The notes: generated by a model not told the origin, from the letters alone. A stretch of DNA of 63,551 nucleotides, filler included, from Ministeria vibrans ATCC 50519 (GCA_943704425.1; 8 parts of 8 records of this genome joined end to end with filler, not necessarily neighbours in it), one strand, 5' to 3'; counted from the whole stretch's first letter, positions 1-6,845 are shown. Numbers and translations are program-made.

Positions 1-72
1 CTAACCCTAACCCTAACCCTAACCCTAACCCTAACCCTAACCCTAACCCTAACCCTAACCCTAACCCTAACC
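1..72 (-). repeat. Telomeric repeat (CCCTAA)n/(TTAGGG)n, chromosome end 1
   Basis: Perfect CCCTAA tandem array at the start of the scaffold. Confidence 0.98.
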
Positions 73-874
73 GAGACATGAACTTTACGATTGTATTCAG
101 ACGTTTAACACATACTCAAGCAGCTTATGGGGCCCACTCGGAATACATCGCGATCCTCAACACACACATCAAACACAAAAACACACAAGAGGATACTACA
201 AGCAACACCAAAGAACAAATACCAAAACAACACACATAATATCAAAAACAAACAATCACAAACATTAACAAAACAACACAGTCACACACAAAAGTAATAA
301 AACGCGCCACACTAACAAACACAAGAGCAAACAAACAAACACAACGTGCTCAGCAGGCACTCAAAGCCACAAAGACTCATGTCAAAGCTTAAATGACTGA
401 ACCGCACCATCCAAACTCAAACTTCATCCATTGCACCCAAGAACACCCAACCAAACGCCACCACCATCGCCTTGGCCAGCCAAAACTGCCAATACCATGC
501 CAGCATCCACCGCCACAGACCCACCGTCCGACATTAGCAACAAACTCAGACTCTATCTGCCGCAACAGAAAATCTTCGTTTGGCCCACATCTCATACCAC
601 GTCACCATGTCTTTCACAACATTTGACGCCATCTTCTTCAGACGAACACGCTCACTCTCACTGAAACGCACCAGCACCGCTTGTGGCCACATTCCTGACA
701 CAAGAACCGATGGACGCATCACTTGAAACGGCACAAGCCACAGTGCAACCTGCGCGCTCGCACCATCCTGTGACGCATCCTTCAACCATTCTTGAAAGCC
801 TGCCTGTAGTACGCCCAGGGCGCGCTCTATACCACTAACCCCAGATGCAGTGCACGCAAACATGTGGTCCACAT
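73..874 (-). mobile_element. 5'-truncated non-LTR retrotransposon inserted in telomeric repeats (ORF2 C-terminus plus 3' UTR)
   Basis: Telomeric repeats on both sides. The minus-strand ORF (stop at 546) begins DVDHMFAC, the tail of a LINE CCHC knuckle. Bases 73-339 recur at 38592-38860 with an identical junction. Confidence 0.72.
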
Positions 875-923
875 CTAACCCTAACCCTGATCCAAATCCC
901 AAATCCCAACCCAAATCCTAACC
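875..923 (-). repeat. Internal degenerate telomeric repeats
   Basis: ctaaccctaaccctgatccaaatcccaaatcccaacccaaatcctaacc. Confidence 0.85.
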
Positions 924-1003
924 GTTCTCGTCTCGTTCACTCTCTTTGCACCACTAAAAGTGATAGTGATGACGATCAAACATACTACAATGAAAACTCA
1001 ACT

Positions 1004-2428
1004 CAACAGTTGTGAAATTTCACTCCCTCACTCAAAAATAAACTTTTGCCGTTTATCTCATATCTCATTTTTTTCTTTGCAAGCATATTGGAGGGAAGCG
1101 ACGACAAATCGGTCAGTCCCTTTGTCCGAAACAGTCTCTCTGCTCTCTCTTTCACTGTCCCTCCGCATTTTAGTCTCTTTTCCTACTCACAATGTTACCC
1201 ACTATCTCTATCTTATACTCACTTTTGATTATGTTCCCTTGCTTGCAACGAATAATTCGGGTCTTCCAGTGAAACACTCAATAGTGACTCGACCGACGGA
1301 AATTGTTCCAAGCCAATCGTTTTCCCTTCCACCTTTTTCACCTTTTCCTCTTCTTCCCTCTTCTCTTTCGTTCCCTCACTCTTCGTCTTAATTTGTCTCT
1401 CAGTCTTCGTCTCAATCTGTCCCTCACTCTTCGTCTCACTCTTCGTCTCAATCTGTGCCTCAGTCGTTTCCGTCTCAGTCACTCTCTTCTCTGCTTCTTT
1501 TTCTCCGTATTCCCTTTCCCGCTCATCTACTCTTCTCGCCTCTTCTTCTTCCTTTCCACACATTTCCTCATCGCTCTCACTCCCATCGTCTTCCTCTTCC
1601 TCCTCCTCCCACATTTTGCGCCGTTTCACTTTGATTGAGCCCACACCACTCGCATCCTCTCCACTCCGCTTCGTTCCTCCTCCTCCTCTTGCATCTCCCC
1701 TTGTTGTTGTTGTTGCCGCTGCTGCTTCTTCATGATTCCCTCGCGCAGAGCATCCGCATTCTTTTCCTCAATCTCTTCCAAGTCGCGCATGGCACTGCGA
1801 TGGTCAAACTGGTGTCGTGGCCCGGACAGGATCTTTTCGCGCATCTGCCGCTTCTGCAGCTCCGCCTCCTGGCGTTCCTTCTCCTTATGTCGAATAAAGT
1901 CAGCAACTCTAAGAAAAAAGAAAGAGAAAAAGAGAGAGACTGTCAACGACCTCTTGGCGCTCGAGTGGGATTTGTGATACTGTTTTTCAGCGTCTGACGA
2001 ACGCGTCGTCCCCTCAGATCCCGACACGCGTCGACGTTGTCGTCTTTGTTTCGCGAGAGCTTGGCGCCTGCAGACCGCAGCATGCTGCCAAAGCTGCCCT
2101 TGCCGCCGTAAAGACGCAGCGAGATGGTGATGGTCGAAAATGCCGACGACGTCACGTCTTGTGGGCTTCGCTGCTGTCGCTCCCGGCCTGAAGGCAGCCG
2201 TTCACGCGCACGACAGTCTTGCTTGCGTCAAGCCCGTACTCGCTGCAGACGAGCGCACACGCCTGGTGGATTGACAGAGAGAGAGACGGGGAAGGGGTTG
2301 GGGGGATGAGAAAGAGAGAACGATGTTTGGTGAATTGCTACAGTGTGCGCTGAGCATGATTCGACAACACGACAGGGTAGGCGTGCGAAGCACGAAATGG
2401 GAGGTCCACTGACGATAAACTGGGGCAT
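1004..2428 (-). pseudogene. SDE2: SDE2-like gene (ubiquitin-fold N-terminus, SAP-like C-terminus), frameshifted; 3' end approximate
   Basis: [14 protein letters not shown]...ACRDLRGRR and LQAR..LKCGGTVKERAERLF match SDE2 motifs. Apparent frameshifts at ~1997 and ~1728 indicate decay or sequencing error. Confidence 0.8.
1374..1455. repeat. Coding minisatellite (ETKSE/ETKTE units) in SDE2
   Basis: Repeated ctcactcttcgtct units. Confidence 0.7.
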
Positions 2429-2483
2429 TGTCGTTCGGTAAGAAGAGAAAAATAAACTGAAACTGAAACTGGGAGTATTCATT

Positions 2484-3460
2484 TCATCCAGCACCGGCCA
2501 CATCCTCTGCTGGACAACTCCCTGTTCGCGCATAGCGCGACATGTTGTCTTTCACAACCGCCATCATCTCCTCGCCGAACAACGACGTCGCCACATCCGT
2601 CACAAGACGGCGCACGCTATGCACAGCCGCCGCATGGCGACACGGATTCAGATGATCCGCATCTCCAATGTGGCCTGTCGCCCCATGGATGCCATCAACA
2701 AGCTCATCGTACTTCTCGACGTCCAAGACNNNNNNNNNNNNNNNNNNNNNNNNNNNNNNNNNNNNNNNNNNNNNNNNNNNNNNNNNNNNNNNNNNNNNNN
2801 NNNNNNNNNNNNNNNNNNNNNNNNNNNNNNNNNNNNNNNNNNNNNNNNNNNNNNNNNNNNNNNNNNNNNNNNNNNNNNNNNNNNNNNNNNNNNNNNNNNN
2901 NNNNNNNNNNNNNNNNNNNNNNNNNNNNNNNNNNNNNNNNNNNNNNNNNNNNNNNNNNNNNNNNNNNNNNNNNNNNNNNNNNNNNNNNNNNNNNNNNNNN
3001 NNNNNNNNNNNNNNNNNNNNNNNNNNNNNNNNNNNNNNNNNNNNNNNNNNNNNNNNNNNNNNNNNNNNNNNNNNNNNNNNNNNNNNNNNNNNNNNNNNNN
3101 NNNNNNNNNNNNNNNNNNNNNNNNNNNNNNNNNNNNNNNNNNNNNNNNNNNNNNNNNNNNNNNNNNNNNNNNNNNNNNNNNNNNNNNNNNNNNNNNNNNN
3201 NNNNNNNNNNNNNNNNNNNNNNNNNNNGAGCTTACGATGGGTTTGAATTGGCAGCGAGGGCAGATGTTCGCGTCGCTAAACTGGTCTGCGAGCTCAATGA
3301 ACTTGTGGCCTTCGAAGGGGGCGTTGCAGAAGACGAGGTTTTCGCTTTGAACCGGTTCGGAGGGACACGCCTCGGCATGCAGACACGCGAAGTACTGGTG
3401 CGCCTCGGTGGAGGCCAGGCACGCCGCGAGGAGGAGAGACAGAGCAACTGGACGATGCAT
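2484..3460 (-). CDS. Secreted Cys-containing hypothetical protein spanning an assembly gap
   Basis: Signal peptide MHRPVALSLLLAACLASTEA at 3460. A coding-like ORF at 2484-2726 after the gap is the likely C-terminus. Confidence 0.55.
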
Positions 3461-4632
3461 TTCTGAGAGAGAGAAGCGGCAAGGCAGAAAAAAAGAAGAA
3501 AAACAACAAAGCGAAAATAATTAGGCAAAAAAGTTGTTTGTGCTCATTGGATCCGTGTTCTTTTCAACTGAATCGTCACTCGTACCAATCACAAGCCAAA
3601 TTCAAGAATAAATTTGGAAAGTCCAAGTCTAATTGGCCCTCTCGGACCTTATGCAAATTTCGAATTTCAGACCGAATTCAGTCAGACAGGTGATTTCATT
3701 GAGCAAATGAGAGCCCATCTGTCAGAGTGGTCTGTGTCTCATGTGTTATGACCCCCTTGTCACAACGCGGAGCTTTTTGCGCCAGTCGTTTGTTTTCTGT
3801 GGTCTGGCACAATTATTGTTCAATTATTGATGACGTACTTCGACACTCTCAGCGTTATTTTTGTGTTTTGCTTAATTAAATATCGCACTGCATTCTGCAA
3901 TCAATCGATTGTTCGCTCTCCGTTGGAGGCAGGCGGGCACTCAGGCAGCAAACGAGCGTATCTTTTCCCAGCGCGGGCCGTCGCCCCTGGCCAGCCAAGG
4001 TCGACTACTTGTCGCGGGCATGGTCCATGGACAGACCATCGGAGTGCGCCGGACTCTGTCCCACTCCGGTTGTAACCAAAATCGGTTTGACCCTGCCTGG
4101 CCACTGCCCTTTATAATCTCGGATCTCGCCCCCTAAAAATCTCAGATTTTCTCACCGAGCTCGATCAGCCCATTAGTAAACTTATGGCGTTGATTACGCT
4201 CTGTTCCGGCCGTGCTTGACGTCCTCGCCGCGCACATGCCATACACCTCAGTAACAACAATGTTCGTCGTCGCGAATCTCGCCAGTTTATTTGCTAGTTT
4301 GGTCGTGGCGGCAGCAGGAAAAAACAAATCTCGCCAAAAACAGTGTCGTGTTTCAGTCTCTCCTCTTTGTCACCCATGTGTCTTTTTGAACTGTAAAGTG
4401 TACAATCATTGGAAGTGAGTGAAAGTTTCGAATTTTTCAAATTTCGAGTGAATCGCAATTTTTTATCACTTTTGGCGCGCTACTCTGTCCGTCGTTCCAC
4501 GCGACTAAGTCGCTTAGTCCCGATCCTTTAACGTTGCAGTAATAGTGTGGACACGTCTCATGTCAAAGAAATCGTCATTTTCATGTCCAGTACGTCGTTT
4601 GGAGGGAAACGAGGTTTGTTCTGCTTTACTCA

Positions 4633-5082
4633 TTGTACACAAAGGCGACGCCGACGATTCCGACTGCATCCGAGGTATCTCTCCCTCGTGGAATGAAGTT
4701 CATACCGACGTTTGGCTCGGGGTTCCTGCCCGTGTTCAGCCCGGTCCTGTTTTCGGGCATGGGCACGATTGCGAAACTGACCGAGTCGGCCGATGAGGTC
4801 AAAGACGCGCGCTCCCAGTTTGCTCGCGTAACCAAAGAAGGTTCTCTTACGGACGTCTGCACAGAGCTCGACAAGCCGTTGTCCGGCCGATCTGCGTCTA
4901 GAATTCTGAACAGAGGCCGCAGTGCTTGGGGTCGCGCACCTTACGAACGGTATGAGGACCGGCCGGCTATTCCGCTGGCGGAGGACCCGATGTCGCATAT
5001 GAACAGTTCCCGATACGTTTTACACACACTAAAGATATCGATGAAGCAGTTCCAAGAGCTGGTTGAGGCGGCGGCGCGGTAA
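4633..5082 (+). CDS. Hypothetical ORF inside the TIR element
   Basis: 149-aa ORF with no recognisable motif. Confidence 0.3.
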   Translation: MYTKATPTIPTASEVSLPRGMKFIPTFGSGFLPVFSPVLFSGMGTIAKLTESADEVKDARSQFARVTKEGSLTDVCTELDKPLSGRSASRILNRGRSAWGRAPYERYEDRPAIPLAEDPMSHMNSSRYVLHTLKISMKQFQELVEAAAR

Positions 5083-5201
5083 AAAAAATGCTACTTACCC
5101 TCCTCCCATCTCTCTCCCATTAACATTAATGATATTTTCGTAGATGTGACAATCGCATGCGCGGTCCTCGCGTCGGCCTGCTTCCTCCGACACGCGGTAA
5201 A

Positions 5202-5894
5202 TCAAAGTACACACTCGAAGAACGAGTGTACATTGGCCTTCACCATTTTCAGGGCCAAACTTATTCGCAGATGGTGGAGCACTTTCACACAAGTGTCTTC
5301 GCCGTTTCTAAATACGTCCACCTCACGATTCTTGCTGCCTCCTCGTTGAAATCGAAGTGTTGATTTCAATCGGAGGGCCCAAAGGTGTCGTTGGAGGCGT
5401 AATTGAGAGTGTGTTTGTTGTCGACGATTTGGCGCCCGAAGTCTTCGTCGCTGTTGACGTCGTAATGAAGGTGGTGTCAGACGCCCTGCGATGGGAACAA
5501 TGGGTGTCGTTGGGGGGGATGTGATTTGCACGGGAGAGACTGGAGGAGTCGTAGAAGTGTGGAGGAAGCCCTCCCCATCTGTTGGCGCCATAAGTTGAGA
5601 ATTCTCCTCTTCGTCCTCGTTCTCGTCCTCGTCTTCGCCCTCATCTTCGTCCTCGTCGTCCTCCGAGGCGACTACACTGCCACCATCACCATATTCGCGC
5701 TGATCCTTGTCGCAACCCTGGTCAGAGTCACCATCAAAGGAGAGCTCACGTTCGATTCCTTTGTCGAGGCGATCCTTCTTTGCCACCTCCTGAACAGCCA
5801 TCGTGAAAGCCGTTTCACCCCAAACGTCGCTCGGTAAACGCTTTAAGGTACGTGTGCGACCTCGAGCGCTGGTGTGGTGCATCAGTTTCTCCAT
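5202..5894 (-). CDS. Acidic/Pro-rich ORF inside the TIR element (possible transposase C-terminal remnant)
   Basis: 230-aa ORF with a D/E tract and a candidate splice acceptor (ctcag) just upstream. Confidence 0.35.
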   Translation of the reverse strand: MEKLMHHTSARGRTRTLKRLPSDVWGETAFTMAVQEVAKKDRLDKGIERELSFDGDSDQGCDKDQREYGDGGSVVASEDDEDEDEGEDEDENEDEEENSQLMAPTDGEGFLHTSTTPPVSPVQITSPPTTPIVPIAGRLTPPSLRRQQRRRLRAPNRRQQTHSQLRLQRHLWALRLKSTLRFQRGGSKNREVDVFRNGEDTCVKVLHHLRISLALKMVKANVHSFFECVL

Positions 5895-6700: not shown

Positions 6701-6845
6701 AGGAGTGCCCGGACTCCCTATAACATGTCCCACCCCACGGAAATTCGGAGTTTTCTAATACCAGGTCCCAGGGGAGTGCCTCGGACTCCCTATTAAACAT
6801 GTCCCACCCCACGGAAATTCGGACTTTTCTAATACCAGGTCCCCC
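6701..6845. repeat. Tandem ~70-bp direct repeat (2 copies)
   Basis: ggagtgcc..ggactccctat..acatgtcccaccccacggaaattcgga..ttctaataccaggtcccc appears twice. Confidence 0.9.

Follow-up and report, generated by a model that had tools for sequence, protein, structure and literature searches.

Telomere-specific retrotransposons bear on the relation between telomerase and retroelements, and on how chromosome ends are built and destabilised. The first 923 nucleotides of the window, a term used here for the whole 63,551-nt stretch of Ministeria vibrans DNA that was analysed, raise the question of whether such an element inhabits this genome, as a piece of retroelement sequence lies there between two blocks of telomeric repeats. 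Our answer, to which we give a probability of roughly 85%, is that positions 73-874 (minus strand) are a 5'-truncated copy of a recently active, TTAGGG-specific non-LTR (LINE) family, inserted by target-primed reverse transcription. The window begins where contig C1583 begins (position 1 is C1583 position 1), in an assembly of 29.7 Mb and 2,860 contigs.

Read from the chromosome end inward, the locus opens with a terminal telomere tract at positions 1-72, (CTAACC)12 on the plus strand and (GGTTAG)n on the G-strand, which is a 100% match in TRF and forms the physical start of the contig. The length of this tract is probably limited by the assembly; contig-end telomere tracts measure about 110 bp or less genome-wide. 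The element follows on the minus strand, beginning with its 3' UTR (73-545; 473 nt), which is 75% G+T on the sense strand, contains no poly(A) or A-run and ends in ...AAAGTTCATGTCTC at position 73, where it abuts GGTTAGGG. Next to it lies the C-terminal coding fragment of a single long ORF (546-874, minus strand; coding part 549-874, stop 546-548). This fragment holds the second half of a CCHC knuckle (DVDHMFAC) and a tail of about 100 residues, and the ORF called over 546-914 reads ...DVDHMFAC... accordingly. A stop at 546, a GT-rich 3' UTR and the lack of poly(A) had been described in an earlier note on this DNA, and all three are as described. Proximal to the element, positions 877-923 (minus strand) hold degenerate telomere-like repeats (GGTTAGGATTTGGGTTGGGATTTGGGATTTGGATCAGGGTTAGGGTT) that served as the insertion target; these are older than the perfect distal tract. 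The order on the G-strand is therefore degenerate repeats ending in ...GGGTTAGGGTTAG, the element from ATGTGGACCACATG to CATGTCTC, and then GGTTAGGG(TTAGGG)n.

Care must be taken with the 5' junction. Two bases, AG on the G-strand (875-876, minus strand), fit the telomere repeat (TTAG) as well as the element, which reads GA-AG-ATGTGG in longer copies, and they represent microhomology at this junction. The comparison was made between the window at 875-876 and the upstream sequence of two longer copies (L006 and L029), and the BLAST alignment reaches 876. Because of this 2-nt ambiguity, the earlier claim that the hexamer is split in register at TTAG^GG holds exactly for the 3' junction only; the 5' side can equally be read as TTAG/ATG or GGGTT/AGATG, where the slash marks the junction. 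The earlier description of the locus as spanning 1-923 was accurate, and the boundaries of the element itself can now be tightened to 73-874. A 3'-terminal RNA structure found no support, as the last 80 nt fold no better than shuffled sequences (z = -1.14) and the copies are too similar for covariation.

Further inward, a run of N (an assembly gap) occupies window positions 2700-3250, about 1.8 kb from the element, and a 74-bp tandem duplication (2 copies, 94% match) lies at 6702-6843. Overlapping shadow frames aside, all ORFs of at least 230 aa between 5.2 and 15.6 kb of the window are on the minus strand, pointing toward the telomere.

The reconstructed element and its relatives

Longer copies in the same genome can be used to extend the element beyond the window fragment. 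One of these, on C2693, is 97% identical to the fragment over 439 nt and continues upstream into an RNase H-like domain. A chain of contigs (C2679, C1813/C1429, C1787, C1131, C277, C100, C2693 and the window), with overlaps of 108 to 601 bp at 96 to 100% identity, joins the window copy to a 534-aa piece with RT motifs. The earlier note had named longer, RT-bearing copies as a check on its reading, and such copies do exist. The reconstructable element is about 5.25 kb in length and has one ORF of about 1,590 aa, the frame of which is open piece by piece, with the pieces connecting; the C1429 copy carries a private frameshift. In order, the ORF comprises an N-terminal linker, a LINE RT, a thumb, a spacer of about 300 aa, an RNase H-like domain, a CCHC knuckle and the tail of about 100 aa.

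The domains differ in how readily they can be recognised. In the case of the RT, the motifs SPGDDG, FDIAKCFD, RQGSVLGP (within TRQGSVLGP) and FVDD can be read directly, and the Pfam RVT_1 match on the C2679 piece is weak (E 8.6e-4, below the curated cut-off). The RT of human L1 ORF2p is the best solved-structure match in a PDB sequence search, whether with the family or with its 41%-identical paralogue. A search for homologous proteins gave no match for the RT piece, nor for a flanking ORF that we take to encode a protein kinase. Pfam does not detect RNase H in the family's own sequence; the region is 30% identical (E 1.6e-11) to a stretch of the metagenome protein P0151 that Pfam calls RNase_H, and D, E, D and H...D positions can apparently be made out by eye. 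As for the zinc knuckle, longer copies read CPECGDE(N/D)EDVDHMFAC, a complete CCHC motif, which means that the window copy starts inside the knuckle, just as had been supposed from DVDHMFAC. The zf-RVT profile is weak in the telomeric family (E 0.23) and clear in its relatives.

Tiling is complete from the linker to the 3' end, and protein and DNA walks through the genome yielded no sequence upstream of the pre-RT linker. Residues 1-295 of the N-terminal piece are found only on C2679, the longest copy, whose abrupt start, at ...CATAATG/GAAATTGAG, directly follows part of another copy. All assembled copies are 5'-truncated; an ORF1 is not seen in the element, and an endonuclease is present in no assembled copy. 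Genome-wide, PF14529 gave no hit over the cut-off, and PF03372 gave 18 hits, none of them tied to the family. On the other side of the RT, the REL motifs RHD and KPD are absent, by eye, from the 100-aa tail after the CCHC knuckle, and no Pfam nuclease hit was obtained at E<=1.

Relatives from other sources can be informative here. A profile of the RT, run against 1.8 billion proteins, gave 38,477 hits at E<=0.001; all top hits scanned carry RVT_1, and five (E 1e-63 to 1e-40) are clearly closer relatives. Both P0151 (1,931 aa) and P0003 (1,502 aa) have the order RVT_1, RNase_H, zf-RVT. APE motifs (TWNVCNL, VCVQDT, GDLND, SDHLP) can be picked out by eye at the N-terminus of P0151. For P0004, the best BLAST match to the N-terminal RT piece, the ORF upstream of the RT matches PF03372 over its full length (E 4.4e-7). 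The presence of APE in P0151 and P0004 makes the lineage APE-type, and the APE-bearing relatives are 24-36% identical to the family. Residue 185 of the element aligns with residue 599 of P0151, and the start of C2679 falls just past the end of the relatives' APE domain. We infer that the C-strand nick discussed below is made by an APE-type endonuclease encoded by the element and seen only in these relatives. PDB sequence searches with the relatives' APE gave no match, and P0151 returned only generic R2 and L1 RTs.

LINE-type APE fragments are found in the genome on C2588 (an orphan of 651 bp) and on C2136. As candidates for the missing endonuclease part they could not be tied to the family; neither overlaps it, and the C2136 APE has the wrong orientation, facing away from the telomere at the contig's other end.

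The closest named relatives, P0001 (MEM7206084.1) and P0003 (MEM6994311.1), two of the five closer ones, were deposited as proteins of bacterial MAGs (Planctomycetota and Myxococcota), on contigs of 4-7 kb. The contig of one of them, locus L091 (GCA_039028275.1), has a GC content of 70%, as does the Logan contig L090, which carries P0151, a cluster-mate of the other MAG protein. We take the bacterial-MAG relatives for mis-binned eukaryotic contigs.

The genome also contains other retroelements; RVT_1 hits number only about 10 genome-wide. Other LINE families are represented on C2581 (L060, 2-1534, minus), C1664 (L095, 423-1133, minus), C2136 (L094, 3-875, minus), C2588 (L082), C2515 (L069) and C1645. 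The C2581 RT is 41% identical to that of the telomeric family over the aligned stretch, the C1664 fragment is 70% identical to the metagenome relative L092, and C2136 carries an ORF1-like region together with an APE of the same lineage. No telomere repeats were seen at these other families in the parts that were read. A second retroelement, with a 684-aa open frame, is found at L006 (C2693, 1206-1833, minus) and L097 (C37, 169-2220, plus) and shows the motifs IIPKVHK...RPIAA, ADVEALYPS, GIPMGT and RYVDDLF. Its nearest clusters in the protein atlas (score 0.93, a lead only) carry DUF8422, HTH_animal and RVT_1, a combination that we presume to be associated with Penelope-like elements. One of its copies abuts a 3'-truncated copy of the telomeric LINE in the opposite orientation, and telomere repeats were not seen on its short contigs (C2693 and C37).

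Target site and mode of insertion

The 3' ends of the copies can be used to define the target. This end is reached by 29 copies, with an identical last base in 26, and poly(A) is absent from all 26. The bases that follow are GGTTAGGG in 19 of the 26 (junction TCTC/GGTTAGGG) and start with GGT in 24 of them; with one exception, the junctions other than GGTTAGGG start with GGT or GAT. This constant junction, TTAG^GG on the G-strand or 5'-CTAACC^CTAA-3' on the C-strand, means that priming starts from a 3'-OH in the C-rich strand at the latter position. However, the target and a possible read-through RNA both consist of GGTTAG repeats, and the constant register could therefore be inherited from the parent transcript instead of being set by the nick.

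Only four insertions bear on this distinction, namely those at or outside the edge of repeat tracts, which are the only informative off-target ones. Each has a target-site duplication that starts exactly at the 3' junction: GGTACTT (7 bp) on C12, GGTTTTAATTTGATG (15 bp) on C1788, GGTTAGACAATAAATTA (17 bp) on C713 and G(G/A)TTAGCTCCAGGT (14 bp) on C1856. Because the duplications begin at the 3' junction, GG(T) is part of the target, with the second strand cut 7-17 bp downstream. The C-strand nick at CTAACC^CTAA, which the earlier note had proposed, agrees with these sites. Together, the duplications and the constant junction indicate classical target-primed reverse transcription from a C-strand 3'-OH. 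Within telomere tracts, the commonest 5' register is a flank ending in ...GGGTT, found in 18 of 36 cleanly readable cases, where BLAST extension into microhomology can move the 5' boundary by a base or two. Combined with the 3' register, this flank gives hidden duplications of 4+6n bp, so that those inside the repeats are likely to be 10 or 16 bp long.

These features can be assembled into a mechanism. A 3'-OH on the C-rich strand at CTAACC^CTAA would serve as primer for cDNA synthesis, which begins on the terminal base of the RNA (...CAUGUCUC). A read-through GGUUAG tail on the RNA may pair with the C-strand end and help synthesis to start precisely; the GGT or GAT at the start of all off-target sites is consistent with such a contribution, and pairing of a GGUU-like sequence with the target has been proposed for SART1 (PMC7265360). 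Priming from the C-strand makes the sense strand of the element part of the G-strand, with its 3' end toward the chromosome end. Synthesis would often stop short of the 5' end, leaving nearly every copy with its own truncation point, and second-strand cleavage 7-17 bp downstream would produce the target-site duplications, which are invisible within repeats.

Alternatively, the element may encode no nuclease at all, in which case pre-existing telomeric C-strand 3'-OH ends (replication intermediates, nicks or gaps) would anneal to the read-through GGUUAG. We regard this as improbable. The lack of an endonuclease in the assembled copies is what it predicts, but the longest copy looks 5'-truncated and not complete, and relatives at 24-36% identity do carry APE. 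Similarly, the GGT or GAT that begins all off-target sites can also be explained by microhomology to the GGUUAG tail, and a constant junction can be copied from a parent; however, a staggered second cut, as is usual when target-primed reverse transcription is driven by a nuclease, is implied by duplications of 7-17 bp, and the GGGTT flank in half of the readable cases suggests sequence-specific cleavage of the top strand. Target-primed insertion at an endonuclease-made nick is therefore the reading that we prefer.

Copies, arrays and chromosome ends

A DNA search of the window's own genome gave 49 matches to the element, and an outward walk, in which loci were mapped to a common coordinate, gave at least 74 non-redundant copies on 50 contigs; this count is a lower bound, and its coordinates come from contig tiling only, with no merged or consensus sequence. 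The 5' ends are spread over coordinates 938-5245 of the reconstructed element, with about 70 distinct positions, and almost every copy has its own truncation point. A family with one shared 3' end, variable 5' truncation and copies that tile up to a LINE RT and an RNase H-like domain bears out the earlier proposal of a telomere-repeat-specific non-LTR retrotransposon. As the last 120 nt are the same in 12 of 20 copies, the amplification is recent. The copies are flanked by telomere repeats and not by LTRs, and telomere-like repeats lie immediately upstream in 61 of the 73 copies for which this flank is available. Telomere repeats are by far the most frequent site of insertion, which answers the first of two further points that the earlier note had singled out for checking; the second was whether a single shared inner boundary would reveal subtelomeric duplication, and many different inner boundaries were found.

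Orientation is equally consistent. With few exceptions, copies at contig starts are on the minus strand and those at contig ends on the plus strand, so that the 3' end points outward, and the great majority of copies conform to the earlier statement that the 3' end faces the chromosome end. The exceptions (C12, C563, C904, C1494, C1735 and C2825) are all internal or gap-adjacent, with C1735 and C2825 beside scaffold gaps. A recurrent contig pattern consists of unique subtelomeric sequence, TTAGGG repeats and then the element at a new start, with the contig ending about 109 bp later. As contigs break about 109 bp into the repeat and the assembly is fragmented, copy counts, array structures and distances to the true chromosome ends are approximate. 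As a rough indication, 8 of the first 21 listed contigs with at least 5 perfect repeats carry the element. The element also accounts for the assembly breaks at many chromosome ends.

Two telomere/element arrays lie inside scaffolds, at C1735:79058-80528 and C2825:9327-10139, and adjoin N runs. Either chromosome ends were joined during scaffolding or these are interstitial telomere fusions. Large DUF285 (BspA-like, PF03382) repeat genes are also subtelomeric (L071 on C1813, 4258-6342; L072 on C277, 5894-7000), and they lie just inside the telomere and element at no fewer than two chromosome ends.

Could such a family have spread as ordinary subtelomeric segmental duplications of a dead retroelement fragment, with no site-specific transposition? 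C2371:119856 and C2825:10060 do agree in their 5' flank and in the point of truncation (virtual coordinate 5238), and long identical stretches are common to C31, C100 and C2223. Nevertheless, this explanation is very unlikely, as it must contend with some 70 distinct 5' truncation points against one common 3' end, with unique flanking sequences that differ between copies, with target-site duplications at off-target sites and with tandem fragments between which new TTAGGG runs lie. In another reading, the element does not insert inside the repeat tract and attaches at the terminus to the G-rich overhang, in the manner of HeT-A/TART or of Penelope-like elements that lack an endonuclease. This would suit head-to-tail arrays at chromosome ends and a genome that holds a Penelope-like RT, but it can practically be dismissed, as the orientation is opposite to that of G-overhang priming (the element has its sense strand on the G-strand and its 3' end distal), telomere repeats lie on both sides of copies, the RT is LINE-type and not Penelope-like, and the 3' end ...CATGTCTC has no reverse-complement telomere repeats in the form of CCCTAA runs (cf. 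PMC8557442).

Target-primed insertion into telomere repeats, the preferred reading, can also be followed through the later history of chromosome ends. At several ends (C1735, C1887, C1813, C2679 and C1168), fragments form arrays with a few TTAGGG units between them. Head-to-tail arrays of this kind, with short TTAGGG spacers, would arise when new telomere receives one insertion after another. Other copies are 3'-truncated and capped by telomere repeats, as on C1429 (break within the RT), C1813, C2326, C1735 and C1168. Because the 3' end is distal, these are the expected product of terminal loss and telomerase, and terminal erosion followed by telomerase healing would generate them. In the case of C1168, GGTTCGTCCGTCGTGTTCTT was considered as a target-site duplication and rejected; it is a 16-nt internal element fragment, followed by healing.

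New telomere tracts very often open with GTTCTT before the first AGGGTTAGGG, whether after unique sequence or after broken element copies. Examples include C2121:178303, C2223:580, C100:1454, C1813:21465, C1168:155073-155300 and C2427:92-149. Exact GTTCTTAGGGTTAGGG occurs 22 times genome-wide and its reversed control not once; nearly all of the 22 are near contig ends and outward-facing. Some tracts hold TTAGGG-TTC-TTAGGG repeatedly. The GTTCTT start may mark places where telomere was added de novo, for instance through telomerase copying bases beside its template. A telomerase RNA with ...GAAC 3' of a CUAACCCUAA template would account for the GTTCTT-AGGG start of healed ends.

The number of ends involved, the arrays and the scars of erosion and healing suggest a role for the element in chromosome-end maintenance. 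A broader and quite tentative view can be built on this. The family may be an independently evolved telomere specialist of an unnamed APE-RT-RNase H-zinc finger LINE lineage, known only from eukaryotic-looking metagenome contigs, and it may be a regular component of most chromosome ends, where it would alternate with telomerase through insertion into fresh repeats, erosion and healing, with GTTCTT-AGGG marking the healing. Such ends would be intermediate between pure telomerase telomeres and the retrotransposon telomeres of the Drosophila type.

Comparison with known telomeric retroelements

Few telomere-specific cases have been documented, and these include SART/TRAS in insects, MoTeR/FoTeR/Cnl1 in fungi, GilM/GilT in Giardia, Zepp in Chlorella, a lizard Tx1 element and terminal Penelope-like elements (PMC10088271, PMC12857005). 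The telomere-specific LINE lifestyle was previously known mainly from insects, fungi and a lizard. The present locus adds a clean and apparently young case from a different LINE lineage, in a eukaryotic genome of about 30 Mb with TTAGGG telomeres. Its dozens of independent insertions define the target nick to the base, show duplications and record both erosion and healing. Should a full-length copy come to light, it would provide, in its endonuclease, a natural TTAGGG-strand-specific nickase for comparison with the TRAS1 and SART1 endonucleases and possibly for use as a tool.

The element belongs among the non-LTR (LINE) retrotransposons, as it combines a LINE-type RT with a common 3' end, variable 5' truncation, duplications and no LTRs. 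Athena and Coprina, which are endonuclease-deficient Penelope-like elements, resemble it in being confined to chromosome ends. They differ in having another class of RT and in attaching to G-overhangs via reverse-complement telomere repeats and hammerhead motifs, in the opposite orientation (PMC8557442). The LINE-like RT, the distal 3' end and a 3' end free of CCCTAA runs set the element outside the Penelope-like group. MoTeR1, FoTeR and Cnl1 of the fungal CRE clade are, like the element, TTAGGG-specific non-LTR retrotransposons with arrays at chromosome ends, and they have been linked to end instability (PMC12857005). However, their RT is followed by an REL nuclease (CCHC...RHD...E...R/KPD), whereas the tail of the element has no such motifs and its relatives have an N-terminal APE. 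In addition, it is their 5' end that faces the chromosome terminus (PMC12857005), whereas here it is the 3' end. With no REL motifs and the opposite orientation, the element falls outside the CRE clade (MoTeR, FoTeR, Cnl1 and SLACS).

More similar are the LINEs that are specific for telomeric repeats (SART/TRAS and Tx1-1_ACar), with which the element has in common a fixed position and a single orientation. Tx1-1_ACar (Tx1 clade, Anolis) is an APE-type LINE reported in vertebrate-type TTAGGG repeats (PMC10088271), a likeness drawn by description only. As a vertebrate element, it differs in host. An RNase H-like domain is also not typical of the Tx1 clade. SART1 (R1 clade), an APE LINE of Bombyx mori, occupies a fixed position inside telomerase-type repeats, has its sense strand on the G-rich strand with a bottom-strand nick on the C-rich strand, undergoes 5' truncation and coexists with telomeric repeats, and in all of these respects it is like the element (PMC7265360). 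The differences lie in the details: SART1 cuts TT^AGG of a 5-mer repeat, whereas the junction here is TTAG^GG of a 6-mer; SART1 has ORF1 and ORF2 and needs poly(A), whereas the element is without poly(A) and shows no ORF1; and an RNase H-like domain, which follows the RT and precedes the CCHC knuckle, distinguishes the element from SART1. The nearest database relatives of its RT are unnamed elements on eukaryotic-looking metagenome contigs, and the missing poly(A) alone sets it apart from the R1 clade. Its telomere specificity probably arose independently. We file the element as a further member of the known class of telomeric-repeat-specific LINEs, working like SART1.
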